Positions 338 to 64,000 of a stretch of DNA of 64,000 nt are shown in pieces. The translations under genes were made by a program, and so were the position numbers. This stretch comes from Perna viridis. Its lineage: Eukaryota. The stretch is taken from contig CM074521.1 of assembly GCA_037379345.1 (NCBI GenBank), forward strand, positions 26,002,704-26,066,703, read 5' to 3'. The notes under the pieces are model-generated. The model worked only from the letters and a program-made list of their open reading frames with translations, was not told where the DNA came from and did not search any database. Within the stretch, counting starts at the first letter, position 1. Every line of letters starts with the position of its first letter.

Positions 338-1501
338 CCGTTGATTGTGTTATTAAAGATGTTGTTCCTGTAGGTGTTTGACCAGTTGGTGGGGTAGTAG
401 CTGATGTTGTAGCAGAAACAGTAGCAGTTGTGGTCAGACTAACAGTTGTTGTAGGTGGAGCAGTAGTACCTGATGTAGTCTGGCTGGCTGTTGAACCAGT
501 TGTAGTACCTTGTGTGGTTGGTGGTGCAGTGGTACCTGATGTAGTCTGACTAACTGTTGTACCAGATGTAGTACCTTGTGTGGTTGGTGATGCAGGAGTT
601 CCTGATGTGGTCTGACTAGCTGTTGTTCCAGAAGTAGTTCCTTGTGTAGTTGGTGAAGCAGTGGTACCCGATGTGGTCTGACTAGCTGTTGTTCCAGATG
701 TAGAACTTTGTGTGGTAGTAGGAGGAGGTGTGGTTGGTGGAGCAGTGGTACCTGATGTAGTCTGACTAGCTGTTGTGCCAGATGTAGAACTTTGTGTGGT
801 AGTAGGAGGAGTGGTTCGTGGAGCAGTGGTACCTGATGTGGTTTGACTAGCTGTTGTGCCAGAAGTAGTTCCTTGTGTAGTTAGTGAAGCAGTGGTACCC
901 GATGTGGTCTGACTAGCTGTTGTGCCAGATGTAGAACTTTGTGTGGTAGTAGGAGGAGGAGTGGTTGGTGGAGCAGTGGTACCTGATGTGGTTTGACTAG
1001 CTGTTGTGCCAGAAGTAGTTCCTTGTGTAGTTGGTGAAGCAGTGGTACCCGATGTGGTCTGACTAGCTGTTGTGCCAGATGTAGAACTTTGTGTGGTAGT
1101 AGGAGGAGGAGTGGTTCGTGGAGCAGTGGTACCTGATGTGGTTTGACTAGCTGTTGTGCCAGAAGTAGTTCCTTGTGTAGTTGGTGAAGCAGTGGTACCC
1201 GATGTGGTCTGACTGGCTGTTGTGCCAGTTGTAGAACTTTGTGTGGTAGAACTTGGAGGAGTGGTTGGTGGAGCAGTGGTACCTGATGTAGTCAGACTAG
1301 CTGTTGTTCCAGAAGTAGTTCCTTGTGTAGTTTGTGGAGCAGTAGTTCCTGATGTGGTCTGACTAGCTGTTGTACCTGATGTAGAACCTGTAGTTGTTGT
1401 AACAGAGGTTGTACCTTGTGTGGTCGGAGGAGCAGTGGTACCAGATGTTGTCTCGCTAACTGTTGCAGTTGTGGTTCCTACAGTTGTTGTTGAAGGTGTA
1501 C
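338..1501 (-). CDS. PTS mucin exon (1164 nt, phase 1-1)
   Basis: TTTTAAG|GTACACCT acceptor and ACGG|GTAAGT donor; TTQGTTSGTTASQ/TTPPPPTTTQSST repeats; length divisible by 3. Confidence 0.85.
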
Positions 1502-4500
1502 CTTAAAAATGATGGTAAATTAAAGTAACTGACTTGGAGAGTAAAAAGAATAAATAAACTATTGTCATTTATAACAATAATTTCATCAGGTGAATTTGAA
1601 AAGAAAAAAATACATAGTTCAACACCAATATTTATAATTAATACGACAGTAGAACTGCCAAATTGTCAAAAAATTAAAAATGGGCTTCTTTCTTTTTTAA
1701 CTACAAGGTTGTATTAACAATCCTTATGTTTGGTTAATACTATGAACTACTTGACCTAATAACCAACAAGAAAATTGGTATTTAACCAGTAGTAAATACA
1801 GTAATGTCTTTGTTTCTTCATAAAGCCAAACAATCAAGCAAGGTTTCAACAAAATCCCATTTAGGGAGGATAATGATTTTTGATGTGCCAAATTATGAAA
1901 AAAAATATCTACTTTTTTTAAACATTGAACAATTGCAAAAGAACCTATACTGATTTTATCAAATAATGCTTTTACTGCAAGAAATAAAGTAAAAACATTT
2001 AAACAAATTATCCTCAATGCAGTCTCAGTTTTTCTTAATGCAACTTACTGAAATGGATTTGTGCATCTTACATTAAACCTTAATAAAATTTGTACAAATG
2101 ACAAATAAAAAAAAAACGTAAGCTGTATTTTCAGCTGTTACAACATTTACAAATCAATACTACATTATACTGTATCGCTTCTATTCACTTTCCATTAATT
2201 TCATCACGAAATTAAAAACTTTGCAGCTGTTTATTTTTATTTTGACATATGGGCCACGTGCTAAAAAAAAAAAAAAAATTTGTCAAAAAACGTCTTGATA
2301 TAATAGGCTTTTATGATTGGAATATTCGGATAGAATCTCCTGCTAAAAGAAATGCAATAAAATCAAGTGTGTTTGTCTAATTTGGCAGACTTTACACACT
2401 TTGCTCCATTTTGCATCCATGTTTCCATGTTATGCGTTGATGTTCTGCCAAAAACGTTTAGTTGGCAAATCAACATACATTTTAAAACAAAAAATATTAG
2501 AGACTATACATACTGATTCGAATAGTTTATTTGAAGGGTCGAATTTGATATAACAGCAGATACCCATTTGTATTTGCATTAAAAAGGAGTTATTACCTGT
2601 TGTAAAGCATGCTCTAACTTCAACATCTAATGAGTAATCCTTTGTTGCATCTTTCTTGCTCAGCACTTCAATAACTATTCCAACAGCACGTGTGTTAAAA
2701 TCAAATATGACTTCTTCATCCCCATTGAATACCTATTTATTAAGATGACATGTAAGTAAATATAAACGTAGACAACTTCCTTATAAATAATAATATACAC
2801 TTTAGTGTACAAAACACTATAATATACACTTTAGTGTACAAAACAATATAATATACACTTTAGTGTACAAAACACTATAATACACACTTTAGTGTACAAA
2901 ACACTACAATATTGCACATTTATTTAAATCTTTATCACAATGGAAAACTGTATTGGTCGAGCAGACATGCTGCAATTTTTTAATATGGGTACAATAAGGA
3001 TAAGTACATGTAATGTACACTATACTGTATTATAACCTATTTATTATACAGCTATCATTGAAAATATAAAGAGAGTAATTGCCTTGACATCTGTTTTAAA
3101 CAGTTATTAACGTCAACAAGCCAGTTTGTATGATCAATTTTGTTTGGACGGAAAAAACTCAAATCCAAAATGAAACTTCCAGCTATACCAAAACAGAAAG
3201 GTACAGAATGGTCATGTGACCTTAATAAAAGTTTTCCATAGTTTAAAGACATTTTTATTGACTTTGTAACAACTTACATTAAAATCATTACTGAAAAGTA
3301 TTATTTTCCGTTTATTCCACTACTAATTTATTGTGTAAGCTTTGAAAAATGTCATCACATTTCGTCAATGTGATAGACTTTGTAAGTATGACAACCCCAT
3401 ATATATTTGAAAAAAAATTGCTCTCTTCGTTCAAAATGTTTGAACAACAAAATGTTCATCACATTAACATGGACATTTGAGAGAGATGTCAGAATGATTA
3501 AGTGTTTTTTTTTTGGTTAACTTTTAATTTAAAACAGCACATTCTGTCTTAAGTTAATAAAATCGTTCATTTTAATACTTGCCTGACCATTTTTGTATTC
3601 AACTGGAGGTTTGCCTTCTTCGATAACCAACGAAATTGTAAAAGTTCCAACATTATTATCTTCTGGGTGCAAAAATTTAGTAGAACCAAGTTCTGTTTCT
3701 GTTTCAAATCCTATTTCTATTTTGACAGTATTAGTTGTTACAATCAGAGGTTCAGATTCAATTCCTGAGTCTGGACGCAATGCTTCACTATTTTTATTTC
3801 CATTGACTATCACAACTGGTGTAAAAACTGGATTCTGCATACCCTCATCATTGGTACAAACATTGGACACAGGTGTGGTTGTTTGCACTTTAATGTAAAA
3901 GAAACAAAATAAGATTATCATACCGGTTAACCTAAGGAACGTGTTATATTGTGGGATATTGTCCAAAATTGACCCTGTCTTGTGTGAGATATTAATTTAC
4001 CAAATTTTGTATGTAAGATTTCAATTATTTAGAACATTTTTCACAGATAATATAGTAATTTTAAGAAAAAAATATTCTACAAATCTTATATTTATATGTA
4101 AAAGATTCTGAAGTTTTCATTGATTTTGTCCACCTAAAGATGGAGGGTTAACAGACAGGGAATAGGTTCGATAATTGGTTGTAGTAACATGACCATTATA
4201 GAGTCTATCAAACACGCATGCACACACAAGCACTAGATTTTTTTGCCATCATTTGCCAGCTCATGAAAAAAAAATAATCAGACAAAAAACAAACAAAAAT
4301 AACCAAAAAACAAAAAAACAAAACAAAACAAAAAAAAAAACCCAAACAATTTTCAATGCATTTTTTATTTTCCACGTAAGATTAAACATTTTAGAAAAAT
4401 AGTTCTCGTCTTTATTTCTGATGATAATTTATGCTCTTTGGGCAGTTCTGAATTTAAATTTTATTTCAACATAAAAATAATGCATTTCTTGAAAAAGAGT

Positions 4501-7500
4501 GGATATAAAAGCTGAAAGAAAACAATCTTCATACGTATTATCACAAGTAGTTGGTCTTTGATAGCAGAATAAGATTTGCAAAACTAGAGAAAAATAAGCC
4601 TCTATTTACTATGTGAGATATAATTAACATGCAATAAACATTATTAAAGAAGATTCAAACTATTGATCAAACATTGACTAAAAATAGTAAAAAAATCTCG
4701 AAACGGTAATGCCATATTAAATTTCCCAAATGTATTTTTTAAATCGATTGGGCAAATTAAAATCTCATATACTGATTAAAGATTAGAATCATGATACCAA
4801 CTCATATATGAAAAAAATCCTTGAATAGATATAAATGTAACTCGTACGAAATAGTTTTTTACATGAAAATATGATATATATATATATATATATCTAAAGT
4901 AAGAATGACCTCGACTTCTTTAAAATCTTTTGCATACAAAAATAACAAGCAAATAAATATTGTAAAACATGGTATGCTGTACATCACTTTCAAGGAGTAA
5001 CCTCTTATCAGTAGCTTAAAAACCAAAATATAAGAGTTCAAGACCAAAAAATAACTTAAAACCATATCGAGTAAATATGAAAATAGGAACATAAATTCAG
5101 CATCGAGAATTAATTCAACTGTAAGTAAAACGAAGAAACCTCGATATTTTATGGTTATTGTATCATGTGCTATTGCAAATAATGTATAAAGATATAATTC
5201 AAGTCAGACAAGTCTGACTAATGACCTAAATTATACAGGGGTTATTTATTCTGTTCACCAATAATACTCCATAATGCAAAGTTGTTCTGTTGACATGCAA
5301 TACACAACTCTCTAGTAAGGAAATTAACAGACAAAATAAAATTTCAAATCCGTGTGTTTTTTTTCTCTAAACACGGAAATACATTCAATCAAACTTTCAT
5401 CTTCAGAATATGTTGACCTGAAGTTAAAACTTGAGGTCGTACCTTGAGTAGTTGATGGAACAGTTGTACCTGTTGCAGTTTGACTGATAGTTGTTCCAGA
5501 AGTAGTGCCCTGTGTGGTTGGTGGAGCCGGAGTACCTGATGTAGTTAGGCTAACTGTGGTTCCAGATGTAGTACCTTGTGTGGTTGGAGGAGCAGAAGTA
5601 CCTGAAACTGTCTGGCTAACTGTACTTCCTGATGTTGTACCCTGAGTGGTTGGTGAAGCAGGAGTACTTAAAGTGGTCTGACTTGCTGTTGTACCAGCAG
5701 TGGTACCTGATGTAGTCTGGCTTGCTGTTGTACCAGATGTAGTACCTTGTGTGGTTGATGGAGCAGGAGTACCTGATGTAGTCTGGCTGGCTGTTGAAAC
5801 AGATGAGGTACCTTGAGTGGTTGGTGGAGCAGTGGTACCTGAAGTCGTCTGACCAGCAGTTGTTCCAGCAGTTATACCTGATGTGGTTTGGCTGGCTGTT
5901 GTACCAGATGTAGTACCTTGTGTTGTTGGTGGAGCAGTTGTACCTGGTGTTGTCTGACTGGCAGTTGATCCAGAGGTAGTCTGACTAGTGGTTGATCCTG
6001 TTGGAGGTGCAGTTGGAGTTGTTTGTCCTGTTGTTGACTCTAAAGAAATTAATATTCAGTTATGCATGAACATTTTCAGGCCATTTCAAGATGCAATTTG
6101 TGCACGACATCTCAGAAACAACTTTGATTTCAAACTATATTATCCGGCACAATGAACACAATATTCATAATAACTTTGTGACAATTTACCTGTTGACTGT
6201 GTTGGTACAGTGACTGTGACTGTCGGCGTTTGACCAGTTACTGGAGTCGTAGCAGAGGTAGTGCCTGGTGTGGACTGACTTGCTGTTGTACCAGATGTAG
6301 TACCTTGTGTGGTTGGTGGAGCAGGAGTACCAGAAGTCGTCTGACTAGCTGTTGTTCCAGCAGTGGTACCTAATGTGGTTTGACTTGCTGTTGTACCAGA
6401 TGTAGTACTTTGTGTGGCTGATGGAGAAGTGGTACCTGATGTGGTCTGACTAGCAGTTGTGCCTGAAGTTGTCAGACTAGTCGTTGTTCCAGATGTAGTA
6501 CTTTGTGTGGTTGGTGAAGCAGGAGTACCTGATGTGGTCTGCCTAGCTGTTGTTCCAGATGTAGTACCTTGTGTGGTTGGTGGAGAAGTGGTACCTGATG
6601 TGGTCTGACCAGCTGTTGTTCCAGCAGTGGTACCTAATGTAGTTTGGCTCGCTGTTGTACCAGATGTAGTACTTTGTGTGGTTGGTGGAGAAGTGGTACC
6701 TGATGTGGTCTGACTAGCAGTTGTGCCTGAAGTGGTTCTTGAAGTTGTCAGACTAGTCGTTATTCCAGATGTAGTACTCTGTGTGGTTGGTGGAGCAGTG
6801 GTACTTGATGTGGTCTGACTAGCAGGTGTTCCAGCAGTGGTACCTAATGTGGTTTGGCTGGCTGTTGTAGCAGATGTAGTACTTTGTGTTGTTGGTGGAG
6901 CAGTTGTACCTGATGTGGTCTGGCTGATGGTTGATCCAGGAGTGGTTTGGCTAATGGTTGATCCTGTTGGAAATGAAGGTGGAGTTGTTTGTCCTGTTGT
7001 TAATTCTAATGAAATTAATATGCAGATTTGGCACTGTTTATTAATGTTTGAACAATCAAATGGCCTAGATTCAATTGCCTAATGTAAGAGTAAAAAAAAT
7101 CAGAAACTGTAAAAGAATCAAAAACGTAAATCACATGACTTTTAAAAAAATAAAAAAAACAGAAGAAAGAACAACTTTTGTTATATTGATTGTGCTCTAA
7201 CACAAGAAATGGTCTTCAGGTGTATCGAAGGAAAAACATTGTATTTTTACAGCCTTCCCAGCTTCTAAACAAACAAAACACAAGTCAAAAAACACACACC
7301 AACACTTGGAGAAAAAACTGCTTCCGACTAATACTGACTTAAATTTAAGATGGTGATATTAAGTTAAACGGGCACGATAGACATTGTTAAATGCGACAAA
7401 ATCTATATTTTAACACTTTCCATTAATAAACCTGAGTGCTAAAGCAAAATACTAAGAATGCTGAAAAGTAGCTCCTGAATATCAAAATATGGGGAAAATT

Positions 7501-10500
7501 GTTTATTTTACAACTGATTGAAAAGTTATAATTTTGCAATAACTTAACTAAGTCATGAATGAATATTTTTTCTGCCAATTTTATTTCCCTTTTGGTGGAT
7601 TTAAATATCATATAGACACATACGATATTATCATATGAACACATAATGTCTAAAAAGATTTCAAGGAGTAATTAATGCTTTTAACACAGATCTACAACTT
7701 TGATTTTATTCAACATAATTTACAAAATGTTCACAATAAATTTATGACAACTTACCTGTTGATTGTGTTTCTGATGTTGTCTGAATAGCCGTTGTTCCAG
7801 ATGTAGTACCTTGTGTGGTTGATGGAGCAGGAGTACTTGATGTAGTTTGGCTGACCGTTGTACCAGGTGTAGTACCTTGCGTGGTTGGTGGAGCAGTGGT
7901 ACCGGAGGTTGTCTGACTAGAAGTTGTACCTGAAGTGGTTCCTGATGTGGTTTGGCTGGCTGTAGTACCAGATGTTGTGCCTTGCGTGGTTGGTGGAGCA
8001 GTGGTTCCTGATGTTGTCTGACTGGCTGTTGTACCAGTAGTGGTTCCTGATGTGGTTTGGCTGGCTGTCGTACCAGATGTAATGCCTTGCGTGGTTGGTG
8101 GAGCAGTGGTACCGGAGGTTGTCTGACTAGAAGTTGTACCTGTAGTGGTTCCCGATGTGCTTTGGCTCACTGTTGTACCAGATGTAGTGCCTTGGGTGGT
8201 TGGTGGAGCAGTGGTACCAGACGTTGTCTGACTGGTAGTTGTTTCGGTTGGAGGTGCAGGAGTTGTTTGTCCTGTTGTTGATTCTAAAGAAAAAAATATT
8301 CATATTTTGAACTATAAATAAGTGTTTGAACAATCATTTCGCCCAGATTCAAATGCCTTGTGTGAGAACGAAAATAAAACAAAAAGAAAATCAAATGGCT
8401 TTTTAAAAACAAAAAAAACAAAACAAAAAAAACCCGATTTTTGTAGGTTTTGATTGTGGTCTAAGTTTAGTTTAAGTTGGAGATGTTAGGTTACACAATT
8501 AAGAAATAGAGTACGTGACGAATTCTATATTTTAACATATTTTCTATCCATTACCAAACCTGGGTGCTAAAGCAAAATACTGAATATACTATTAAGTCAC
8601 TCTTGAATATCAACCAAAATATGAGAAAAATATTTGTTTACCAGATGGTTGAATCATTTATATTTCTGCAACAACTTAATTATGTCATGTATGAACATAT
8701 TTCCGCCAGTTTTATTTCACAGTTTAAGACAATTAACCTGCTGATCGTGTTGGTACAATAACTGTTACTGTAAGCATTTGACCAGTTACTGGAGTTGTAA
8801 CAGAGGTGGTGCCGGAAATTTAATAAAAACTAAGTTTCAATTTAACATTTAAATTAAATTGAAAACAAAGCAGTAAGCTAAAGTACCTGTAGATTGTGTT
8901 CCAATTGTAGTAGTTCCTGTGGGTGTTTGGCCAGTTGGTGGAGCAGTGGTGCCAGATGTTGTCTGACTTACTGTTGTAACAGATGTAGTTACTTGAGTAG
9001 TTGATGGTGGAGCAGGGCTACCAGAAGTTGTCTGGCTAACTGTTGTACCAGTAGTGGTTCCTGATGTGGTTTGGCTGGCTGTCGTACCAGATGTAGTGCC
9101 TTGCGTGGTTGATGGAACAGTGGTACCGGAAGTTGTCTGACTAGAAGTTGTACCAGTAGTGGTTTCCAATGTGCTTTGGCTCACTGTCGTACCAGATGTA
9201 GTGCCTTGCGTGGTTGGTGGAGCAGGGGTACCAGACGTTGTCTGACTAGCAGTTGTACCAGTAGTGGTTCCTGATGTGGTTTGGCTGGCTGTTGTACCAG
9301 ATGTAGTGCCTTGCGTGGTTGGTGGAGCAGTGGTACCGGTGGTTGTCTGACTAGAAGTTGTACCTGTAGTGGTTCCCGATGTGCTTTGGCTGGCTGTCGT
9401 ACCAGATGTAGTGCCTTGGGTGGTTGGTGGAGCAGTGGTACCAGACGTTGTCTGACTAGCAGTTGTACCAGTAGTGGTTCCTGATGTGGTTTGGCTGGCT
9501 GTCGTACCAGATGTTGTGCCTTGCGTGGTTGGTGGAGCAGTGGTACCGGTGGTTGTCTGACTAGAAGTTGTACCTGTAGTGGTTTGGCTCACTGTCGTAA
9601 CAGATGTTGTGCCTTGGGTGGTTGGTGGAGTAGTGGTACCGGAGGTTGTCTGACTAGTTGTACCAGTAGTGGTTCCTGATGTGGTTTGGCTGGCTGTTGT
9701 ACCAGATGTAGTGCCTTGCGTGGTTGGTGGAGCAGTGGTACCAGACGTTGTCTGACTAGCAGTTGTACCAGTAGTGGTTCCTGATGTGGTTTGGCTGGCT
9801 GTCGTACCAGATGTGGTGCCTTGCGTGGTTGGTGGAGCAGTGGTACCGGAGGTTGTCTGACTAGAAGTTGTACCTGTAGTGGTTCCCGATGTGCTTTGGC
9901 TCACTGTTGTACCAGATGTAGTGCCTTGGGTGGTTGGTGGAGCAGTGGTACCAGACGTTGTCTGACTGGTAGTTGTTTCGGTTGGAGGTGCAGGAGTTGT
10001 TTGTCCTGTTGTTGATTCTAAAGAAAAAAATATTCAGATTTTAAACTATAAATAAATGTTTGAACAATTATTTCGCCCAAATTCAAATGCCTTGTGTGAG
10101 AACGAAAATAAAACAAAAAGAAAATCAAATGTTTTTTTAAAAACAAACAAAAAACAAAAAAAAACAAAACAAAAAAAACCCCCGATTTTTGTAGGTTTTG
10201 ATTGTGGTCTAAGTTTAGTTTAAGTTGGAGATGTTAGGTTCAACAATTAAGAAATAGAGTACGTGACGAATTCTATATTTTAACATATTTTCTATCCATT
10301 ATCAAACCTGGGTGCTAAAGCAAAATATTGAATATACTATTAAGTCGCTCTTGAATATCAACCAAAGTATGAGAAAAATATTTGTTTACCAGATGGTTGA
10401 ATCATTTATATTTCTGCAACAACTTAATTATGTCATGTATGAACATTTTTCCGCCAATTTTATTTCACAGTTTAAGACAATTAACCTGCTGATCGTGTTG

Positions 10501-55500: not shown

Positions 55501-58500
55501 CAGGAGTTGTACTGGCAGTTCCTGTAAAGCAACAAAAACTCCAATCAATATCAGCTGCTGTAAGTTCTGTTTGCCAGAAATATTTCTCAACAAAACATGT
55601 TCTGTTGACTCAAAAAGTGATGGTTCACATTTTTATACAGATGTAAGGGATATAACAAAACGTACCTGTAGTAGTAATGCCTGGTGGTGTGGCTGTACTT
55701 GAAACTTTCTCTGAGGTTGAACTTACAGCAGTGGTTACTGTAGTTGTTGATTCTATGAAAGAAAACCAATAGACACTGTAACTACATAGATCAAATTAAT
55801 AGACTGATACCTACATTACAAATCAGATTTATAACAGAATTTAACACTGACTGCATGTTCAGGAAAAGATTGTGTATTAAAAACAAAGCAAAAAAAGAAC
55901 AGATGACTGGAAAATAATCAAATGACTTATTATCTAATCTCGGCAATTAGTATTCTTCAAGAAAACAATTTTAAACAACTGATTTGATACTGCCAACATT
56001 ATTCACTGAAACACCAATCAAACTGATCACTGATGTTTTGGTATATTCATTCAACCACAATAAGGCATTCACATACGTACCAACTTCAAAGCAAGCATGT
56101 ATCTGTATTTGGAGTTTGACTGGTTTGTAAGCGTCAATTTTGTCCTCAGGTGTTACAATAATTTCAACTTTCTTTACAAATGGTCTTGTTCCAACACTTG
56201 TTGCAACCTCATCCACAGGTACCTGTACAAAAATCAAAACCATGTATATACAACCTTTCTACATGTAGCAATCAAAGCATAACCATAATCACAATATTAG
56301 TTATGCAAAATGTCTAGGATTTACGAGTCATTCACTGTACGGTTTATTTGAATTGCAAAGAAAAAATCTAATATGATAACTGCGAAGAAAGCATACCTGT
56401 TTTGTTGTCACTGAACCATCGGGATTAGTGAATTTCACTGTAAATGATTTAATGTTGTCCGTTGACACCAGCTTAACTTCTTTTACAGGTCTTTCTTCTG
56501 ACGGTGTGTATACTATGGAAAGTGTTGGTTCAGAACTTTCAAATGGAGTATCAGAGGTTGGTCTCAGGTTCTCAATATTTCCTGTTTTGTCACTCACAGA
56601 TAATTCACTACTTGGAATAAATGTAGGTGACTCCATACCATCTGTTATTTCACAAAGAGGAGTTGTACTGGCTGTTCCTGTAAAACAATCAGGTCACTCT
56701 CGTCATTACATGCAAAGAAAACATAATTTGTTATTTCTCGAACCATTTTAAGTTGACAAAATCAATTGAATTTTTAGACAAGTGTATCATCTCTTCCAAC
56801 AGAACTTTTGTACTTGACAGTTGCATAAACAGTATCAAATATTTCTGAACTAACCTGTACTTGATGTACTTGGTGGTGCAGTTGTACTGGTTACTTTCTT
56901 TGAGACAGAAGAAACAGGTGTGGTAGCAGTTGTTGTTGATTCTGCAAAATAATTAAGAATATCAATTGTTTGTGACAAAGATAAAAGATTATTGCACAAC
57001 AAATGTTATGAAAACCAAAATCTTTAAAAGTATTAAAAGTATTGTCACATAACTACAATGCACAAACTGATGTCTACCAAAAATGATGCTAAGGTATTGT
57101 TTTGTTGATTTCCACTGTTCTTAACAAATAAAATAATTAATATTCCATCATATAAAAGTCACATACCAAGTTCAAAGCAAGCATGGATCTGTACTTGGAG
57201 CTTGACTGGTTTGTAGGCATCAATCTTATCTTGAGGAGTTATGATGATTTCAACTTTCTTCACATCTGGTTCAGTTCCTACATTTGTTGCTACTTCATTC
57301 ACAGGAACCTGAAATAAGGCAATATGATTTTAATCAACTACCAAATGGCAAATCATGCTCACTACCACCACATTCAATTGCACAAAAATACACAGACAAA
57401 CATCTTTCAATTTATTTGGTATGAACACTCATGAAAAAATACAGATACAAACACGACAAAAGTTCAATATCCTACCTGTTTTGTTGTCACAGTGCCATCA
57501 GGAGCAGTGAATTTCACAGTGAATGATTTAATGTTATCAGTTGAAACCAATTTCACTTCTTTTATAGGTCTCTCCTCTGAAGGTGTGTATTCCACAGAAA
57601 GTGTTGGTTGGGAACTTTCAAATGGGGTCTTAGATGTTGGTCTCAAGTCTTCAACATTTCCTGTACTATCACTAACAGACAATTCACTACTTGGAATAAA
57701 TGTTGGTGACTCCATACCATCTGTTATTTCGCAAACAGGAGTTGTACTGGCAGTTCCTGTAAAGCAACAAAAACTCCAATCAATATCAGCTGCTGTAAGT
57801 TCTGTTTGCCAGAAATATTTCTCAACAAAACATGTTCTGTTGACTCAAAAAGTGATGGTCCACATTTTTATACAGATGTAAGGGATATAACAAAACGTAC
57901 CTGTAGTAGTAATGCCTGGTGGTGTGGCTGTACTTGAAACTTTCTCTGAGGTTGAACTTACAGCAGTGGTTACTGTAGTTGTTGATTCTATGAAAGAAAA
58001 CCAATAGACACTGTAACTACATAGATCAAATTAATAGACTGATACCTACATTACAAATCAGATTTATAACAGAATTTAACACTGACTGCATGTTCAGGAA
58101 AAGATTGTGTATTCAAAACAAAGCAAAAAAAAGGACAGATGACTGGAAAATAATCAAATGACTTATTATCTAATCTCGGCAATTAGTATTCTTCAAGAAA
58201 ACAATTTTTAACAACTGATTTGATACTGCCAACATTATTCACTGAAACACCAATCAAACTGATCACTGATGTTTTGGTATATTCATTCAACCACAATAAG
58301 GCATTCACATACGTACCAACTTCAAAGCAAGCATGTATCTGTATTTGGAGTTTGACTGGTTTGTAAGCGTCAATTTTGTCCTCAGGTGTTACAATAATTT
58401 CAACTTTCTTTACAAATGGTCTTGTTCCAACACTTGTTGCAACCTCATCCACAGGTACCTGTACAAAAATCAAAACCATGTATATACAACCTTTCTACAT

Positions 58501-61500
58501 GTAGCAATCAAAGCATAACCATAATCACAATATTAGTTATGCAAAATGTCTAGGATTTACGAGTCATTCACTGTACGGTTTATTTGAATTGCAAAGAAAA
58601 ACTCTAATATGATAACTGCGAAGAAAGCATACCTGTTTTGTTGTCACTGAACCATCGGGATTAGTGAATTTCACTGTAAATGATTTAATGTTGTCCGTTG
58701 ACACCAGCTTAACTTCTTTTACAGGTCTTTCTTCTGACGGTGTGTATACTATGGAAAGTGTTGGTTCAGAACTTTCAAATGGAGTATCAGAGGTTGGTCT
58801 CAGGTTCTCAATATTTCCTGTTTTGTCACTCACAGATAATTCACTACTTGGAATAAATGTAGGTGACTCCATACCATCTGTTATTTCACAAAGAGGAGTT
58901 GTACTGGCTGTTCCTGTAAAACAATCAGGTCACTCTCGTCATTACATGCAAAGAAAACATAATTTGTTATTTCTCGAACCATTTTAAGTTGACAAAATCA
59001 ATTGAATTTTTAGACAAGTGTATCATCTCTTCCAACAGAACTTTTGTACTTGACAGTTGCATAAACAGTATCAAATATTTCTGAACTAACCTGTACTTGA
59101 TGTACTTGGTGGTGCAGTTGTACTGGTTACTTTCTTTGAGACAGAAGAAACAGGTGTGGTAGCAGTTGTTGTTGATTCTGCAAAATAATTAAGAATATCA
59201 ATTGTTTGTGACAAAGATAAAAGATTATTGCACAACAAATGTTATGAAAACCAAAATCTTTAAAAGTATTAAAAGTATTGTCACATAACTACAATGCACA
59301 AACTGATGTCTACCAAAAATGATGCTAAGGTATTGTTTTGTTGATTTCCACTGTTCTTAACAAATAAAATAATTAATATTCCATCATATAAAAGTCACAT
59401 ACCAAGTTCAAAGCAAGCATGGATCTGTACTTGGAGCTTGACTGGTTTGTAGGCATCAATCTTATCTTGAGGAGTTATGATGATTTCAACTTTCTTCACA
59501 TCTGGTTCAGTTCCTACATTTGTTGCTACTTCATTCACAGGAACCTGAAATAAGGCAATATGATTTTAATCAACTACCAAATGGCAAATCATGCTCACTA
59601 CCACCACATTCAATTGCACAAAAATACACAGACAAACATCTTTCAATTTATTTGGTATGAACACTCATGAAAAAATACAGATACAAACACGACAAAAGTT
59701 CAATATCCTACCTGTTTTGTTGTCACAGTGCCATCAGGAGCAGTGAATTTCACAGTGAATGATTTAATGTTATCAGTTGAAACCAATTTCACTTCTTTTA
59801 TAGGTCTCTCCTCTGAAGGTGTGTATTCCACAGAAAGTGTTGGTTGGGAACTTTCAAATGGGGTCTTAGATGTTGGTCTCAAGTCTTCAACATTTCCTGT
59901 ACTATCACTAACAGACAATTCACTACTTGGAATAAATGTTGGTGACTCCATACCATCTGTTATTTCGCAAACAGGAGTTGTACTGGCAGTTCCTGTAAAG
60001 CAACAAAAACTCCAATCAATATCAGCTGCTGTAAGTTCTGTTTGCCAGAAATATTTCTCAACAAAACATGTTCTGTTGACTCAAAAAGTGATGGTCCACA
60101 TTTTTATACAGATGTAAGGGATATAACAAAACGTACCTGTAGTAGTAATGCCTGGTGGTGTGGCTGTACTTGAAACTTTCTCTGAGGTTGAACTTACAGC
60201 AGTGGTTACTGTAGTTGTTGATTCTATGAAAGAAAACCAATAGACACTGTAACTACATAGATCAAATTAATAGACTGATACCTACATTACAAATCAGATT
60301 TATAACAGAATTTAACACTGACTGCATGTTCAGGAAAAGATTGTGTATTCAAAACAAAGCAAAAAAAAGAACAGATGACTGGAAAATAATCAAATGACTT
60401 ATTATCTAATTTCGGCAATTAGTATTCTTCAAGAAAACAATTTTAAACAACTGATTTGATACTGCCAACATTATTCACTGAAACACCAATCAAACTGATC
60501 ACTGATGTTTTGGTATATTCATTCAACCACAATAAGGCATTCACATACGTACCAACTTCAAAGCAAGCATGTATCTGTATTTGGAGTTTGACTGGTTTGT
60601 AAGCGTCAATTTTGTCCTCAGGTGTTACAATAATTTCAACTTTCTTTACAAATGGTCTTGTTCCAACACTTGTTGCAACCTCATCCACAGGTACCTGTAC
60701 AAAAATCAAAACCATGTATATACAACCTTTCTACATGTAGCAATCAAAGCATAACCATAATCACAATATTAGTTATGCAAAATGTCTAGGATTTACGAGT
60801 CATCCACTGTACGGTTTATTTGAATTGCAAAGAAAAAATCTAATATGATAACTGCGAAGAAAGCATACCTGTTTTGTTGTCACTGAACCATCGGGATTAG
60901 TGAATTTCACTGTAAATGATTTAATGTTGTCCGTTGACACCAGCTTAACTTCTTTTACAGGTCTTTCTTCTGACGGTGTGTATACTATGGAAAGTGTTGG
61001 TTCAGAACTTTCAAATGGAGTATCAGAGGTTGGTCTCAGGTTCTCAATATTTCCTGTTTTGTCACTCACAGATAATTCACTACTTGGAATAAATGTAGGT
61101 GACTCCATACCATCTGTTATTTCACAAAGAGGAGTTGTACTGGCTGTTCCTGTAAAACAATCAGGTCACTCTCGTCATTACATGCAAAGAAAACATAATT
61201 TGTTATTTCTCGAACCATTTTAAGTTGACAAAATCAATTGAATTTTTAGACAAGTGTATCATCTCTTCCAACAGAACTTTTGTACTTGACAGTTGCATAA
61301 ACAGTATCAAATATTTCTGAACTAACCTGTACTTGATGTACTTGGTGGTGCAGTTGTACTGGTTACTTTCTTTGAGACAGAAGAAACAGGTGTGGTAGCA
61401 GTTGTTGTTGATTCTGCAAAATAATTAAGAATATCAATTGTTTGTGACAAAGATAAAAGATTATTGCACAACAAATGTTATGAAAACCAAAATCTTTAAA

Positions 61501-64000
61501 AGTATTAAAAGTATTGTCACATAACTACAATGCACAAACTGATGTCTACCAAAAATGATGCTAAGGTATTGTTTTGTTGATTTCCACTGTTCTTAACAAA
61601 TAAAATAATTAATATTCCATCATATAAAAGTCACATACCAAGTTCAAAGCAAGCATGGATCTGTACTTGGAGCTTGACTGGTTTGTAGGCATCAATCTTA
61701 TCTTGAGGAGTTATGATGATTTCAACTTTCTTCACATCTGGTTCAGTTCCTACATTTGTTGCTACTTCATTCACAGGAACCTGAAATAAGGCAATATGAT
61801 TTTAATCAACTACCAAATGGCAAATCATGCTCACTACCACCACATTCAATTGCACAAAAATACACAGACAAACATTTTTCAATTTATTTGGTATGAACAC
61901 TCATGAAAAAATACAGATACAAACACGACAAAAGTTCAATATCCTACCTGTTTTGTTGTCACAGTGCCATCAGGAGCAGTGAATTTCACAGTGAATGATT
62001 TAATGTTATCAGTTGAAACCAATTTCACTTCTTTTATAGGTCTCTCCTCTGAAGGTGTGTATTCCACAGAAAGTGTTGGTTGGGAACTTTCAAATGGGGT
62101 CTTAGATGTTGGTCTCAAGTCTTCAACATTTCCTGTACTATCACTAACAGACAATTCACTACTTGGAATATATGTTGGTGACTCCATACCATCTGTTATT
62201 TCGCAAACAGGAGTTGTACTGGCAGTTCCTGTAAAGCAACAAAAACTCCAATCAATATCAGCTGCTGTAAGTTCTGTTTGCCAGAAATATTTCTCAACAA
62301 AACATGTTCTGTTGACTCAAAAAGTGATGGTTCACATTTTTATACAGATGTAAGGGATATAACAAAACGTACCTGTAGTAGTAATGCCTGGTGGTGTGGC
62401 TGTACTTGAAACTTTCTCTGAGGTTGAACTTACAGCAGTGGTTACTGTAGTTGTTGATTCTATGAAAGAAAACCAATAGACACTGTAACTACATAGATCA
62501 AATTAATAGACTGATACCTACATTACAAATCAGATTTATAACAGAATTTAACACTGACTGCATGTTCAGGAAAAGATTGTGTATTCAAAACAAAGCAAAA
62601 AAAAGAACAGATGACTGGAAAATAATCAAATGACTTATTATCTAATTTCGGCAATTAGTATTCTTCAAGAAAACAATTTTAAACAACTGATTTGATACTG
62701 CCAACATTATTCACTGAAACACCAATCAAACTGATCACTGATGTTTTGGTATATTCATTCAACCACAATAAGGCATTCACATACGTACCAACTTCAAAGC
62801 AAGCATGTATCTGTATTTGGAGTTTGACTGGTTTGTAAGCGTCAATTTTGTCCTCAGGTGTTACAATAATTTCAACTTTCTTTACAAATGGTCTTGTTCC
62901 AACACTTGTTGCAACCTCATCCACAGGTACCTGTACAAAAATCAAAACCATGTATATACAACCTTTCTACATGTAGCAATCAAAGCATAACCATAATCAC
63001 AATATTAGTTATGCAAAATGTCTAGGATTTACGAGTCATCCACTGTACGGTTTATTTGAATTGCAAAGAAAAAATCTAATATGATAACTGCGAAGAAAGC
63101 ATACCTGTTTTGTTGTCACTGAACCATCGGGATTAGTGAATTTCACTGTAAATGATTTAATGTTGTCCGTTGACACCAGCTTAACTTCTTTTACAGGTCT
63201 TTCTTCTGACGGTGTGTATACTATGGAAAGTGTTGGTTCAGAACTTTCAAATGGAGTATCAGAGGTTGGTCTCAGGTTCTCAATATTTCCTGTTTTGTCA
63301 CTCACAGATAATTCACTACTTGGAATAAATGTAGGTGACTCCATACCATCTGTTATTTCACAAAGAGGAGTTGTACTGGCTGTTCCTGTAAAACAATCAG
63401 GTCACTCTCGTCATTACATGCAAAGAAAACATAATTTGTTATTTCTCGAACCATTTTAAGTTGACAAAATCAATTGAATTTTTAGACAAGTGTATCATCT
63501 CTTCCAACAGAACTTTTGTACTTGACAGTTGCATAAACAGTATCAAATATTTCTGAACTAACCTGTACTTGATGTACTTGGTGGTGCAGTTGTACTGGTT
63601 ACTTTCTTTGAGACAGAAGAAACAGGTGTGGTAGCAGTTGTTGTTGATTCTGCAAAATAATTAAGAATATCAATTGTTTGTGACAAAGATAAAAGATTAT
63701 TGCACAACAAATGTTATGAAAACCAAAATCTTTAAAAGTATTAAAAGTATTGTCACATAACTACAATGCACAAACTGATGTCTACCAAAAATGATGCTAA
63801 GGTATTGTTTTGTTGATTTCCACTGTTCTTAACAAATAAAATAATTAATATTCCATCATATAAAAGTCACATACCAAGTTCAAAGCAAGCATGGATCTGT
63901 ACTTGGAGCTTGACTGGTTTGTAGGCATCAATCTTATCTTGAGGAGTTATGATGATTTCAACTTTCTTCACATCTGGTTCAGTTCCTACATTTGTTGCTA
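338..64000 (-). CDS. Giant multi-exon mucin-like protein with PTS repeats and >=20 discoidin/FA58C-like domains (partial; extends beyond both window ends)
   Basis: About 82 exons bounded by AG and GT (one GC) with mutually compatible phases; summed length ~24.3 kb; Thr/Ser-rich repeats; FA58C motifs in the 42.8-47.6 kb exons. Confidence 0.85.
2597..2732 (-). CDS. Domain A copy 2, C-terminal exon (VFNGDEEVIF...LDVEVRACFTTG)
   Basis: 136 nt, phase 0-1, AG/GT; paralogue of 16986-17121. Confidence 0.85.
2792..2910. repeat. 29-bp intronic minisatellite, 4 copies
   Basis: aatatacactttagtgtacaaaacactat repeated four times with single changes. Confidence 0.9.
3583..3887 (-). CDS. Domain A copy 2, N-terminal exon (CTNDEGMQNP...EYKNGQ), GC donor
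   Basis: 305 nt, phase 1-0; ends CAG|GCAAGT; paralogue of 18859-19172. Confidence 0.8.
5443..6039 (-). CDS. PTS mucin exon (597 nt)
   Basis: Acceptor TTCTTTAG is clear; donor CAAG|GTACGA is the best phase-1 candidate. Confidence 0.7.
6190..7005 (-). CDS. PTS mucin exon (816 nt)
   Basis: AG / GTAAAT boundaries, phase 1-1. Confidence 0.85.
7756..8283 (-). CDS. PTS mucin exon (528 nt)
   Basis: AG / GTAAGT boundaries, phase 1-1; overlaps ORF 7742..8170. Confidence 0.85.
8887..10017 (-). CDS. PTS mucin exon (1131 nt)
   Basis: AG / GTACTT boundaries, phase 1-1; overlaps ORF 8849..9904. Confidence 0.85.
10635..11255 (-). CDS. PTS mucin exon (621 nt)
   Basis: Same boundaries as its neighbour; phase 1-1. 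Confidence 0.85.
11873..12670 (-). CDS. PTS mucin exon (798 nt; begins GTTLSTTPPPPAPPSS)
   Basis: TTCAAG|GA acceptor; 5' part nearly identical to exon 39619-39951. Confidence 0.85.
13618..13668 (-). CDS. Thr-rich linker micro-exon (51 nt)
   Basis: CAAG acceptor, GTAAGA donor; PTPVSTASTTAGTTTL. Confidence 0.75.
   Translation of the reverse strand, partial: HLPQYQQLQLLLEQPH
13884..14043 (-). CDS. Domain B copy 2, C-terminal exon (KTFEGK...FFRVCYTPGTG)
   Basis: 160 nt, phase 0-1; paralogue of 40530-40683. Confidence 0.85.
14658..14938 (-). CDS. Domain B copy 2, N-terminal exon (VCENPVTFDF...VSENT)
   Basis: 281 nt, phase 1-0; paralogue of 41153-41436. Confidence 0.85.
15648..15728 (-). CDS. 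Thr-rich linker exon (81 nt)
   Basis: TTTTCTAG acceptor, GTAGTG donor, phase 1-1. Confidence 0.8.
16986..17121 (-). CDS. Domain A copy 1, C-terminal exon (IFSGDEQVIF...LDLEVRACFTTG)
   Basis: 136 nt, phase 0-1. Confidence 0.85.
18859..19172 (-). CDS. Domain A copy 1, N-terminal exon (CTSEEGMQNP...EYKNGE)
   Basis: 314 nt, phase 1-0, donor GAG|GTATGT. Confidence 0.85.
19589..19912 (-). CDS. PTS mucin exon, last of array 2 (donor uncertain)
   Basis: Acceptor TTCTGTAG is clear; the frame meets TAA near 19563, so a G|GTAC donor inside the repeat must be used or the exon is skipped. Confidence 0.55.
20866..22101 (-). CDS. PTS mucin exon (1236 nt)
   Basis: Array-2 acceptor and donor; phase 1-1. 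Confidence 0.85.
23062..23904 (-). CDS. PTS mucin exon (843 nt)
   Basis: Array-2 acceptor and donor; phase 1-1. Confidence 0.85.
24830..25468 (-). CDS. PTS mucin exon (639 nt)
   Basis: Inside ORF 24744..25514; AG / GTACTT boundaries. Confidence 0.85.
26395..27033 (-). CDS. PTS mucin exon (639 nt)
   Basis: Tandem copy. Confidence 0.85.
27959..28597 (-). CDS. PTS mucin exon (639 nt)
   Basis: Tandem copy. Confidence 0.85.
29524..30162 (-). CDS. PTS mucin exon (639 nt)
   Basis: Tandem copy. Confidence 0.85.
31088..31726 (-). CDS. PTS mucin exon (639 nt)
   Basis: Tandem copy. Confidence 0.85.
32653..33291 (-). CDS. PTS mucin exon (639 nt)
   Basis: Tandem copy. Confidence 0.85.
34217..35035 (-). 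CDS. PTS mucin exon (819 nt)
   Basis: Inside ORF 34158..35081; same splice sites. Confidence 0.85.
35937..36914 (-). CDS. PTS mucin exon (978 nt), first of array 2
   Basis: TATGTAG|GT acceptor and array-2 donor. Confidence 0.85.
38194..39452 (-). pseudogene. Decayed PTS pseudo-exon
   Basis: Acceptor CTAG|GT ACT AAA ACA GGA TAA gives an immediate stop; frameshifts; 8-nt deletion near 38277; eroded donor context. Confidence 0.8.
39619..39951 (-). CDS. PTS exon (333 nt; begins GTTLSTTPPPPAPPSS)
   Basis: Phase 1-1, donor GTAAGC. Confidence 0.8.
40173..40211 (-). CDS. Linker micro-exon (39 nt)
   Basis: TTTTCAG acceptor, GTAGGT donor; STVSSTTYSSST. Confidence 0.75.
40530..40683 (-). CDS. Domain B copy 1, C-terminal exon (KTFTGK...QFRVCYAPG)
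   Basis: 154 nt, phase 0-1. Confidence 0.85.
41153..41436 (-). CDS. Domain B copy 1, N-terminal exon (KICENPVTFDY...TEEI)
   Basis: 284 nt, phase 1-0. Confidence 0.85.
42073..42126 (-). CDS. Thr-rich linker micro-exon (54 nt)
   Basis: AG/GT, phase 1-1. Confidence 0.75.
42326..42379 (-). CDS. Thr-rich linker micro-exon (54 nt)
   Basis: AG/GT, phase 1-1. Confidence 0.75.
42802..42952 (-). CDS. FA58C/discoidin domain 2, C-terminal exon (VFEGNTD...ELRFEIVGCAE)
   Basis: F-x-GN-x-D and LRFE-x-x-GC motifs; 151 nt, phase 0-1. Confidence 0.85.
43396..44765 (-). mobile_element. 5'-truncated, disabled Penelope-like retroelement (RT core + 3' UTR) in an intron
   Basis: NPYKQRFIAGS, IKTYDFSTLYT, MGTNCA-x-x-LADLFL, FRYIDD, YLDL and YDKRDDF motifs; frameshifts and an in-frame TGA; frame ends near 43677. 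Confidence 0.9.
45015..45298 (-). CDS. FA58C/discoidin domain 2, N-terminal exon (ECADEM...AWSP...VTAIILQGG...FVQKFQVGY)
   Basis: AW, VTAI-x-x-QG and FV-x-x-F-x-V-x-Y discoidin motifs; 284 nt, phase 1-0. Confidence 0.85.
45545..45619 (-). CDS. Thr-rich linker exon (75 nt)
   Basis: TTTTAG acceptor, GTGAGT donor, phase 1-1. Confidence 0.8.
46436..46456 (-). CDS. 21-nt micro-exon (ITSTGT)
   Basis: TCTTTTCAG|CT ATA ACA TCA ACA GGG ACA G|GTAGGT; phase 1-1. Confidence 0.6.
46768..46909 (-). CDS. FA58C/discoidin domain 1, C-terminal exon (IFKGNNG...VRIFPLSW...FELFGCMF)
   Basis: VRI-x-P-x-x-W and FELFGC motifs; 142 nt, phase 0-1; different frame from the ORF-track call. Confidence 0.88.
47328..47608 (-). 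CDS. FA58C/discoidin domain 1, N-terminal exon (SCDYVL...PWVP...FVKSFRIEV)
   Basis: 281 nt, phase 1-0, donor GGT|GTAAGT. Confidence 0.85.
48015..48065 (-). CDS. Linker micro-exon (51 nt)
   Basis: AG / GTATGT, phase 1-1. Confidence 0.75.
48227..50235 (-). CDS. Macro-repeat unit: two discoidin-like domains + two linkers (340 aa)
   Basis: Exons 50149-50235, 49691-49971, 49375-49516, 48960-49046, 48535-48815, 48227-48368 (87/281/142 nt, twice). Confidence 0.85.
50461..52471 (-). CDS. Macro-repeat unit (6 exons, 340 aa)
   Basis: Exons 52385-52471, 51927-52207, 51611-51752, 51195-51281, 50770-51050, 50461-50602. Confidence 0.85.
52697..54706 (-). CDS. Macro-repeat unit (6 exons, 340 aa)
   Basis: Exons 54620-54706, 54162-54442, 53846-53987, 53431-53517, 53006-53286, 52697-52838. 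Confidence 0.85.
54932..56941 (-). CDS. Macro-repeat unit (6 exons, 340 aa)
   Basis: Exons 56855-56941, 56397-56677, 56081-56222, 55666-55752, 55241-55521, 54932-55073. Confidence 0.85.
57167..59177 (-). CDS. Macro-repeat unit (6 exons, 340 aa)
   Basis: Exons 59091-59177, 58633-58913, 58317-58458, 57901-57987, 57476-57756, 57167-57308. Confidence 0.85.
59403..61413 (-). CDS. Macro-repeat unit (6 exons, 340 aa)
   Basis: Exons 61327-61413, 60869-61149, 60553-60694, 60137-60223, 59712-59992, 59403-59544. Confidence 0.85.
61639..63649 (-). CDS. Macro-repeat unit (6 exons, 340 aa)
   Basis: Exons 63563-63649, 63105-63385, 62789-62930, 62373-62459, 61948-62228, 61639-61780. Confidence 0.85.
63875..64000 (-). 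CDS. Partial C-terminal domain exon of the next upstream unit
   Basis: ...KLQVQIHACFEL G|GTATGT; cut by the window edge. Confidence 0.85.

Follow-up and report, generated by a model that had tools for sequence, protein, structure and literature searches.

Coding content of the window

The stretch of Perna viridis DNA considered here, called the window throughout, comprises 64,000 nucleotides (nt) of contig CM074521.1 in a 723-Mb assembly (GCA_037379345.1; C11:26,002,704-26,066,703), and probably covers the quarter from the middle towards the 3' end of a single, very large gene on the minus strand for a SCO-spondin-like gel-forming mucin, in which threads rich in Pro, Thr and Ser (PTS) alternate with bead-like modules bounded by two cysteines. 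The window is AT-rich (GC 29-45 %) and contains no N. A mechanical listing gave 79 open reading frames (ORFs) of at least 80 amino acids (aa) on the two strands together. The coding sense lies entirely on the minus strand, where the ORFs are Thr/Ser/Pro-rich frames and short Cys-flanked pieces of domains, and the long ORFs of the plus strand are mirror frames of the PTS repeats.

An exon model was built with a script that chains exons with canonical GT/AG borders by codon score, and was then corrected with transcript joints. The chaining yielded 86 exons and the joints supplied one more, of 142 nt (46768-46909), so that 87 GT-AG exons of the minus strand join into 25,131 nt, or 8,376 aa, with no in-frame stop and with neither a start nor an end inside the window. 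As the script was designed to find in-frame chains, the open frame by itself is weak and non-independent evidence. The modelled protein is 32 % Thr, 14 % Ser and 9 % Pro. PTS sequence accounts for 5,425 aa in 46 exons with at least 50 % Thr, Ser and Pro, a figure that varies with the definition, and these exons are built from tandem repeats of 66, 69 or 105 nt. Larger super-repeats occupy 24.7-33.3k (units of 1,565 bp) and 48.2-64k (units of about 2,235 bp). An earlier reading of the sequence alone (the sequence-only reading) had proposed about 82 exons with some 24.3 kb of coding sequence, likewise without start or end, and about 4,700 aa of PTS sequence; the former agrees with our model within counting error, and the latter within the latitude that the definition allows. 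The features of the window are as follows.

338-1501, minus strand: PTS exon of 1,164 nt, the most 3' in the model (Thr/Ser/Pro-rich frame, chain model, 66/150-nt tandem repeats; ORF 333-1502)
2597-3887, minus strand: 'EGMQNP' module in two exons, 3541-3887 and 2597-2732 (ORFs, exon model, profile-profile match)
5431-6039, 6190-7005, 7756-8283, 8887-10017, 10635-11255 and 11873-12670, minus strand: six large PTS exons with 105-nt repeats
13884-14938, minus strand: 'CENPVTF' module, exons 14658-14938 and 13884-14043 (ORFs, exon model)
16980-19172, minus strand: second 'EGMQNP' module, exons 18859-19172 and 16980-17121 (ORFs, exon model, profile-profile match)
19577-39951, minus strand: arrays of PTS exons with 69-nt (23-aa) repeats, including six 1,565-bp units (24830-33291) with one 639-nt exon each
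40530-41436, minus strand: 'CENPVTF' module, exons 41153-41436 and 40530-40683 (ORFs, exon model)
42802-45298, minus strand: canonical F5/8 type C domain no. 2, exons 45015-45298 and 42802-42952 with a 2,062-nt intron between them (Pfam, joints)
43262-44800, minus strand: dispersed repeat with broken ORFs inside intron 42951-45012, outside the gene product (ORF fragments, contig depth)
45545-45619, minus strand: PTS linker mini-exon between the two canonical F5/8 type C domains (joints and translation)
46436-46456, minus strand: mini-exon of 21 nt (transcript joints)
46768-47608, minus strand: canonical F5/8 type C domain no. 1, exons 47328-47608 (281 nt) and 46768-46909 (142 nt) (Pfam, joints)
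48015-48065, minus strand: linker mini-exon from the array to F5/8 type C no. 1 (joints 47606>48013 and 48065>48227)
48227-64000, minus strand: 3' end of an array of 2.2-kb A/B dimers, with 14 complete modules plus a further one truncated at the window edge (ORFs, exons, joint 48366>48533)

Twenty complete two-Cys modules are thus present, the same number as in the sequence-only reading: 14 of the array type, two canonical F5/8 type C domains, two of the 'EGMQNP' type and two of the 'CENPVTF' type, in addition to the one that the window edge cuts. All 20 carry a Cys at the start and another at the end, as in F5/8 type C, and a disulfide bond between them is predicted. The monomer of the array consists of three exons of 87, 281 and 142 nt, which give 510 nt or 170 aa.

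Splice joints and the wider locus

The exon model was compared with public sequencing runs. Fourteen runs from six studies contain 21-37 % of the words sampled from 40.0-50.0k, which is near the exon share, and four runs from four studies, taken to be RNA, were compared with 42,700-48,699. Eight introns are absent from the contigs of these four runs, and their plus-strand ends, CT..AC, correspond to GT..AG on the minus strand. Within the ambiguity of the cuts, the skipped intervals are 42951-45012, 45295-45540, 45620-46435, 46457-46767, 46910-47327, 47607-48012, 48066-48226 and 48367-48532. The joints 42950>45013, 46909>47328 and 47606>48013 were each found in all four runs. A single contig of 1,631 nt leads from exon 42802-42950, by way of the two canonical F5/8 type C domains, into the 2.2-kb array, and the eight joined exons remain open for 381 aa, over which they encode the C-terminal part of an array module, a linker, F5/8 type C no. 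1, a PTS linker and F5/8 type C no. 2. Both F5/8 type C domains are complete in this frame, no. 1 as a C...GC module. Another contig crosses from one array monomer to the next with 203 other letters between them, which fixes the monomer at 510 nt. Junctions between the module classes had been predicted, and proposed as a test, from the sequence alone; within 42.8-48.7k they are present, as are the predicted strand and splicing.

The repeat at 43262-44800, inside the longest of these introns, has a depth of 10^3-10^5 and thousands of variant contigs in all four runs, which indicates a very abundant transcribed repeat family. Its ORFs had no match in Pfam; one of them, a broken frame, carries the motif 'RYIDDVL', and our guess is that the repeat consists of reverse-transcriptase remnants of retroelement origin. 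Elsewhere, an intronic segment of about 190 bp (~13216-13407) shows 72-87 % identity to at least 44 other places on many chromosomes and resembles a short interspersed repeat.

The locus itself spans about 310 kb and extends approximately 43 kb below the window and at least 204 kb above it (positions outside 1-64,000 continue the numbering of the window). Chaining on the parts of the locus that were read gave model segments of 24,770, 1,534 and 3,437 aa, at least 29,700 aa in total from about 420 exons, and the 24,770-aa segment holds three stops at split codons. The first exon of the array module has 91 matches, all on one strand, at C11:26,051,229-26,216,443 (48.5k-213.7k), so that at least 91 copies of this module are present. 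The one match elsewhere in the genome (C10:40,618,258-40,618,467, plus strand; 56 % identity over 70 aa) is perhaps a stray copy, or else a small paralogue. The sequence-only reading had envisaged one beads-on-a-string mucin of >8,000 aa with at least 20 domains; the single frame with beads is borne out, and the size proved to be a large underestimate of the gene.

The 2.2-kb dimers run up to 127k without gaps or N, and comprise 71 monomers (71 x 170 aa) over about 79 kb. Among the 34 full dimers, identity is 99.8 % in exons and 99.2 % in introns, which implies that the array was amplified or homogenized very recently. Upstream of it follows a 1,787-bp unit, and further on a single exon of 1,518 aa (~177.8-182.3k, minus strand), in which a Gly/Ser/Pro/Thr-rich repeat, 'TTIGSTPGVTSPGG...', continues intron-free into a bead. 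This repeat indicates that the PTS repeat families differ strongly along the gene, and the exon shows that thread and bead may share one frame without a splice. Between 214k and 248k lie a further bead type and LDLa exons; about ten copies of this two-Cys type (from 'CAEVENMSPLSENVK...' to '...AEICVKPG'), each in two exons and with short PTS linkers, were found at ~226-246k.

Both ends of the locus carry domains typical of large secreted proteins of the mucin type. Upstream, at 249-268k and on the same strand, Pfam identified VWD exons at 266.7k/265.0k, 261.0k and 254.4k, which represent three assemblies, together with TIL at 262.2k, LDLa at 249.8k and EGF among the head exons; TIL-like Cys-rich ORFs at 258.2k and 251.2k and LDLa-like ones at 220-224k and 247k were recognized by eye. 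A C8 domain was not recovered from the single head exons. The ORF upstream of the first VWD had no Pfam match, and no EMI domain was found. Downstream, the PTS arrays reach about -25k and include three more two-Cys modules. They are followed by five TSP1 domains, two TIL, a VWC (23.4 bits, below the cut-off of 27.6) and a cystine knot, the last exon scoring 24.9 bits for Cys_knot (cut-off 24) and 33.8 bits for DAN and ending in a stop at about -42.8k. The sequence-only reading had recommended a search of the flanks for VWD, TIL and a cystine knot, among other features. VWD and TIL upstream and a cystine knot downstream place the product among the secreted gel-forming mucin and SCO-spondin-like proteins.

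Some 65 kb past the 3' end of the mucin, a minus-strand frame of >3,361 aa, composed almost entirely of Pro, Val and Gly ('PVPVVVGPVPVGVV...'), occupies C11:25,882,704-25,894,465 (window ~-108,239 to -119,998) and runs off the stretch that was read; it is either another giant low-complexity gene or a satellite.

Fold and kinship of the two-Cys modules

Pfam searches were run exon by exon, which depresses scores; exons were joined only in scripts that checked the frames. Under these conditions F5/8 type C no. 2 matched PF00754 with its first exon alone (44967-45302; E 5.1e-7, 30.3 bits against a cut-off of 28.2), and the first exon of no. 1 gave a match below the cut-off (47301-47669; E 0.0026, 18.3 bits). 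A genome-wide scan with PF00754 found a sole match in the locus, at the exon at C11:26,047,736 (window ~45,033). The exons of the array, 'EGMQNP' and 'CENPVTF' modules, searched one by one, had no match in Pfam.

The kinship of the array bead was sought among proteins and predicted structures. An exhaustive protein search with its first exon matched 49 proteins, the nearest of which come from Mytilus. Genuine relatives are Mytilus coruscus CAC5411568.1, the Mytilus californianus 'mucin-17-like' protein XP_052090872.1, the 'mucin-2-like' protein of Lineus longissimus XP_064639835.1, and Patella vulgata XP_055959230.1-959233.1, besides many unnamed fragments. Bacterial matches (a Providencia invasin, a Citrobacter YadA-like protein, and FN3-rich and PKD-rich proteins) were rejected as relatives since they are compositional, being sums of short T/S/P-rich beta-strand stretches over many Ig-like repeats. 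A word-index protein search with the 1,518-aa exon, scored over its bead part, gave nothing.

The Mytilus coruscus relative was folded with AF2, using an alignment that took in window exons as separate rows. In the resulting model a complete module (residues 187-321) has a pLDDT of 85-96. The top Foldseek matches were factor V/VIII C domains, neuropilin b1b2 and the DDR2 discoidin domain (E 1e-6 to 2e-4). With VIA, residues 187-321 matched neuropilin b1, factor VIII C2, discoidin II and DDR1 with Z of 12.0-12.8 and a root-mean-square deviation of 2.6-3.1 A over 123-129 residues, in alignments that span Cys to Cys. The more distant Patella relative gave Z of 11-12.9 to CBM32, fucosidase C-terminal domains, neuropilin and factor VIII, and its model also matches DOC/APC10 and IFT25, which have the same superfold.

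Gene structure points in the same direction. Transcript joints show that canonical domain no. 1 consists of exons of 281 and 142 nt in phases 1-0-1, and the array bead has the same sizes and phases; the corresponding exons are 284 and 151 nt in F5/8 type C no. 2 and 284 and 154 nt in the 'CENPVTF' type. In Patella, too, the C-terminal part of the bead sits on its own exon. Cysteines at both ends of the module and the identical 281 + 142 nt, 1-0-1 structure support common descent with F5/8 type C. Judged by predicted fold, exon structure and Cys pair, we accept the array bead as discoidin-like, with a predicted eight-stranded, distorted jelly-roll barrel of the galactose-binding-domain-like kind. 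Across 27 sequences the Arg of an 'LRP' motif and one Asn are invariant, which hints at a candidate conserved site.

The two minor classes differ in what can be said of them. The N-terminal part of the 'EGMQNP' module is homologous to the array module by hhalign (probability 96.8 %, E 2.9e-10). That of 'CENPVTF' reached only 5.5 % against the array type and 9.8 % against canonical F5/8 type C in shallow half-domain alignments, and a protein atlas search with a 'CENPVTF' exon gave no usable lead. We therefore leave the two 'CENPVTF' modules unclassified and accept the term discoidin-like for 18 of the 20 modules. The discoidin-like character that had been read from the sequence is accepted for these 18, and the Pfam F5/8 type C threshold is passed or approached by only two of the 20.

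About 1 Mb away, at C11:27,108,437-27,155,840 (plus strand), a second mucin-like locus has several strong VWD matches (the best at 114 bits), and eight F5/8 type C matches there reach or exceed the Pfam cut-off, the highest with 72 bits. Unlike the gene described here with its cryptic beads, this locus resembles the classic type of hemolectin or lophotrochozoan mucin.

Relatives, rival explanations and significance

Public gene models of other animals show parts of the same architecture. The 'mucin-2-like' protein of Lineus longissimus, whose model begins inside an EGF region, has three VWD, C8, TIL and seven LDLa domains together with 13 matched bead stretches. In Patella vulgata a 'mucin-2-like' protein of 4,007 aa contains three VWD, two C8, two TIL and five LDLa domains and then beads. 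It is followed, at OW026356.2:11,317,919-11,342,397, by three identical 376-aa models of 4,479 bp each, 9 bp apart, which consist of two beads with PTS linkers and are labelled 'DNA-directed RNA polymerase II subunit rpb1-like'. The 'rpb1-like' name is plainly a public mis-annotation of a tandem array that annotation has cut up. The M. californianus 'mucin-17-like' model (4,412 aa) has only 21 repeats of 209 aa and no true ends. That automatic annotation would fragment genes of this kind, as had been anticipated, is evident from the 9-bp gaps in Patella and the 21-repeat model of M. californianus.

According to Lang et al. (2016, PMC4948705), the F5_F8 domain typifies the mucin-like proteins of Lophotrochozoa, SCO-spondin is the protein to which invertebrate mucins come closest, and CysD domains occur as insertions within the F5_F8 region of mucins from Lophotrochozoa. 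The protein described here shares with the lophotrochozoan mucins (PMC4948705) a VWD-C8-TIL head, PTS regions, central F5/8 type C domains, a cystine knot and the animal group. It differs in that its central modules mostly escape Pfam and number more than 100 instead of a few, in its TSP1 tail, and in its modelled length of at least 29,700 aa, which exceeds that of the mucins described so far several times over. The domains of vertebrate SCO-spondin follow the same order, with three VWD and TIL, LDLa, TSP1, F5/8 type C and VWC ahead of the cystine knot at the C-terminus, a likeness of domain content and order. In SCO-spondin TSP1 is repeated about 25 times, F5/8 type C occurs once or twice and long PTS regions are missing, whereas five TSP1, huge PTS regions and bead arrays are found here. 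Insect hemolectin/hemocytin, a secreted clotting or adhesive protein, combines VWD-C8-TIL units with F5/8 type C (PMC4948705). It differs in a 3 + 2 layout of VWD, in having just a few F5/8 type C domains of the canonical sort, in PTS sequence that is scant or absent, and in the lack of a TSP1 tail. The CysD domains of MUC2, MUC5AC and MUC5B are, like the beads, small disulfide-bonded globules that interrupt PTS sequence, a functional analogy between unrelated folds and sequences. They occur in only 2-9 copies. Among echinoderms, sea star Sfp1 and sea urchin nectin are large secreted adhesives with discoidin domains and VWD, C8, TIL or EGF; their discoidin domains are few and canonical, and they have neither mucin threads of such scale nor a tandem coding array. 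The sea star protein is also cited in the work on limpet adhesive mucus (PMC7333891). SCO-spondin-like gel-forming mucins with F5/8-type domains are thus already known from Lophotrochozoa, and the present protein is an extreme case of this kind. What is new is a matter of degree and form: a bead family invisible to Pfam, more than 100 beads, a near-identical coding array of 79 kb and a modelled size of about 30,000 aa.

Two proteins of limpet pedal adhesive mucus may bear on the ends of this architecture. P-vulgata_3, which was located to the pedal sole by in situ hybridization, has two C8, three VWD, two TIL and five LDLa domains, and P-vulgata_6 has four TSP1 and a cystine knot (Kang et al. 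2020, PMC7333891). The domain list of P-vulgata_3 equals that of the Patella 'mucin-2-like' model that continues into beads, and P-vulgata_6 resembles the tail seen here. The two were described separately, as incomplete proteins that had neither PTS nor bead arrays. Set side by side by their domain lists, they may be the two ends of one orthologue.

The favoured architecture runs from a head of EGF, three VWD(-C8)-TIL assemblies and LDLa, through PTS threads that alternate with two-Cys barrels of approximately 135 aa, to a tail of five TSP1, two TIL, VWC and a cystine knot. Going by the families involved, the cystine knots would dimerize the tails and the VWD assemblies would link the heads, giving disulfide-bonded polymers. 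The PTS threads, for which O-glycosylation is predicted, would hold water and keep the chain extended, and the beads, which in the main array would interrupt the threads every 170 aa, could act as numerous low-affinity sites at which glycans, lipids, collagen-like partners or other beads are bound or cross-linked. Mucus or a temporary adhesive would be the result. The gene may have grown by duplication, within the frame, of two-exon bead units (phases 1-0-1) and phase 1-1 linker exons, symmetric phases that allow a unit to be duplicated without breaking the frame.

Several points weigh against this account. The transcript joints are limited to 42.8-48.7k, and the single 310-kb transcription unit is deduced from strand, continuity and orthologue architecture. 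The RNA type of the runs is a guess, yet intron-less GT-AG joints are hard to explain otherwise. About 274 kb of flanking sequence was read, with 144-174k and 184-214k (60 kb) left out, and the copy number of the array depends on the assembly of units that are 99 % identical. A scan of 267-278k gave no convincing signal peptide or Met with a hydrophobic first exon. As to the bead, its fold was predicted on relatives (of up to about 60 % identity) and not on its own spliced module, and neither Pfam, a PDB profile search nor hhalign gave a sequence-level link between the array bead and F5/8 type C: the profile of its alignment found nothing among PDB sequences, and array N-terminal parts reached 1.6 % against canonical F5/8 N-terminal parts in shallow half-domain alignments. 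Only seven Trp occur in the 8,376 aa of the model and none in the array bead, so that the conserved Trp of the F5/8 family is absent. A lectin activity of the beads would be an extension by analogy.

The confinement of the joints to 42.8-48.7k would also suit several adjacent genes on the same strand, or internal promoters and poly(A) sites, with head, array and tail for example belonging to different genes. Public annotations of the relatives show separate models, and the head-like and tail-like proteins of limpet mucus were entered as two (PMC7333891). The separate models, however, look artefactual, given the 9-bp gaps between identical 376-aa models and the 21 repeats without ends, and head and beads are joined in the models of Lineus and Patella. 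In the locus itself the frame continues over the parts read without an interrupting stop, start or terminal domain (the three split-codon stops aside), every exon class keeps phase 1-1, and one contig passes from the array into the next domain class. We therefore consider separate genes unlikely. It is far less probable still that the 2.2-kb array is largely an assembly artefact or a non-functional recent satellite of which few units reach the real mRNA. Identities of 99.2-99.8 % over about 79 kb are easily mis-sized by assemblers, and the units collapse in short-read contigs, where they cannot be counted; however, open frames and splice sites are intact in each of the 71 monomers, in a region without gaps or N, high-depth contigs cross from monomer to monomer, and comparable arrays exist in Mytilus and Patella.

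The function of the beads is a more evenly balanced matter. They might not be lectins but inert or self-associating spacers, like the CysD of MUC2 and MUC5, which would determine how the glycan brushes are spaced and how they behave mechanically, and this we regard as somewhat doubtful though by no means far-fetched. Tryptophans and other sequence features that mark ligand-binding F5/8 type C domains have disappeared from the array bead, 71 near-identical copies would suit a mechanical or spacing role as well as binding, and the insertion of CysD in the F5_F8 region of lophotrochozoan mucins (PMC4948705) offers a parallel. On the other side, the closest solved folds (neuropilin b1, factor VIII C2, discoidin II and CBM32) bind ligands, which by analogy would favour binding, and the invariance of the 'LRP' Arg and the Asn in 27 sequences may reflect a conserved site.

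One SCO-spondin-like gel-forming mucin gene thus remains the probable reading of the window. A bolder form of it is quite possible without being the expected outcome: the whole 310-kb locus would give one mRNA and a secreted protein of about 30,000-35,000 aa that carries no fewer than 110 beads of discoidin fold, the bead, free of Trp and unseen by Pfam, would be a spiralian-specific branch of the discoidin domains that acts as a regularly spaced multivalent cross-linker, and P-vulgata_3 and P-vulgata_6 would be the ends of the orthologue. If this were true, the product would be the largest mucin known and titin-like in size.

In summary, the mucus and temporary adhesives of molluscs are studied as biomaterials and as a first barrier to microbes and particles, and their main polymers are poorly known because such genes are broken up by assemblers and annotation pipelines. 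The locus described here yields a near-complete plan of one such polymer, with head, threads, beads and tail, and a bead family that is missed by standard domain searches and is found in bivalve, gastropod and nemertean models. It also offers a clear coding macrosatellite (71 x 170 aa), in which the symmetry of exon phases allows a protein to grow by unit duplication. Our data suggest that the published 'SCO-spondin-like' fragments of limpet adhesive mucus belong to one much larger protein.

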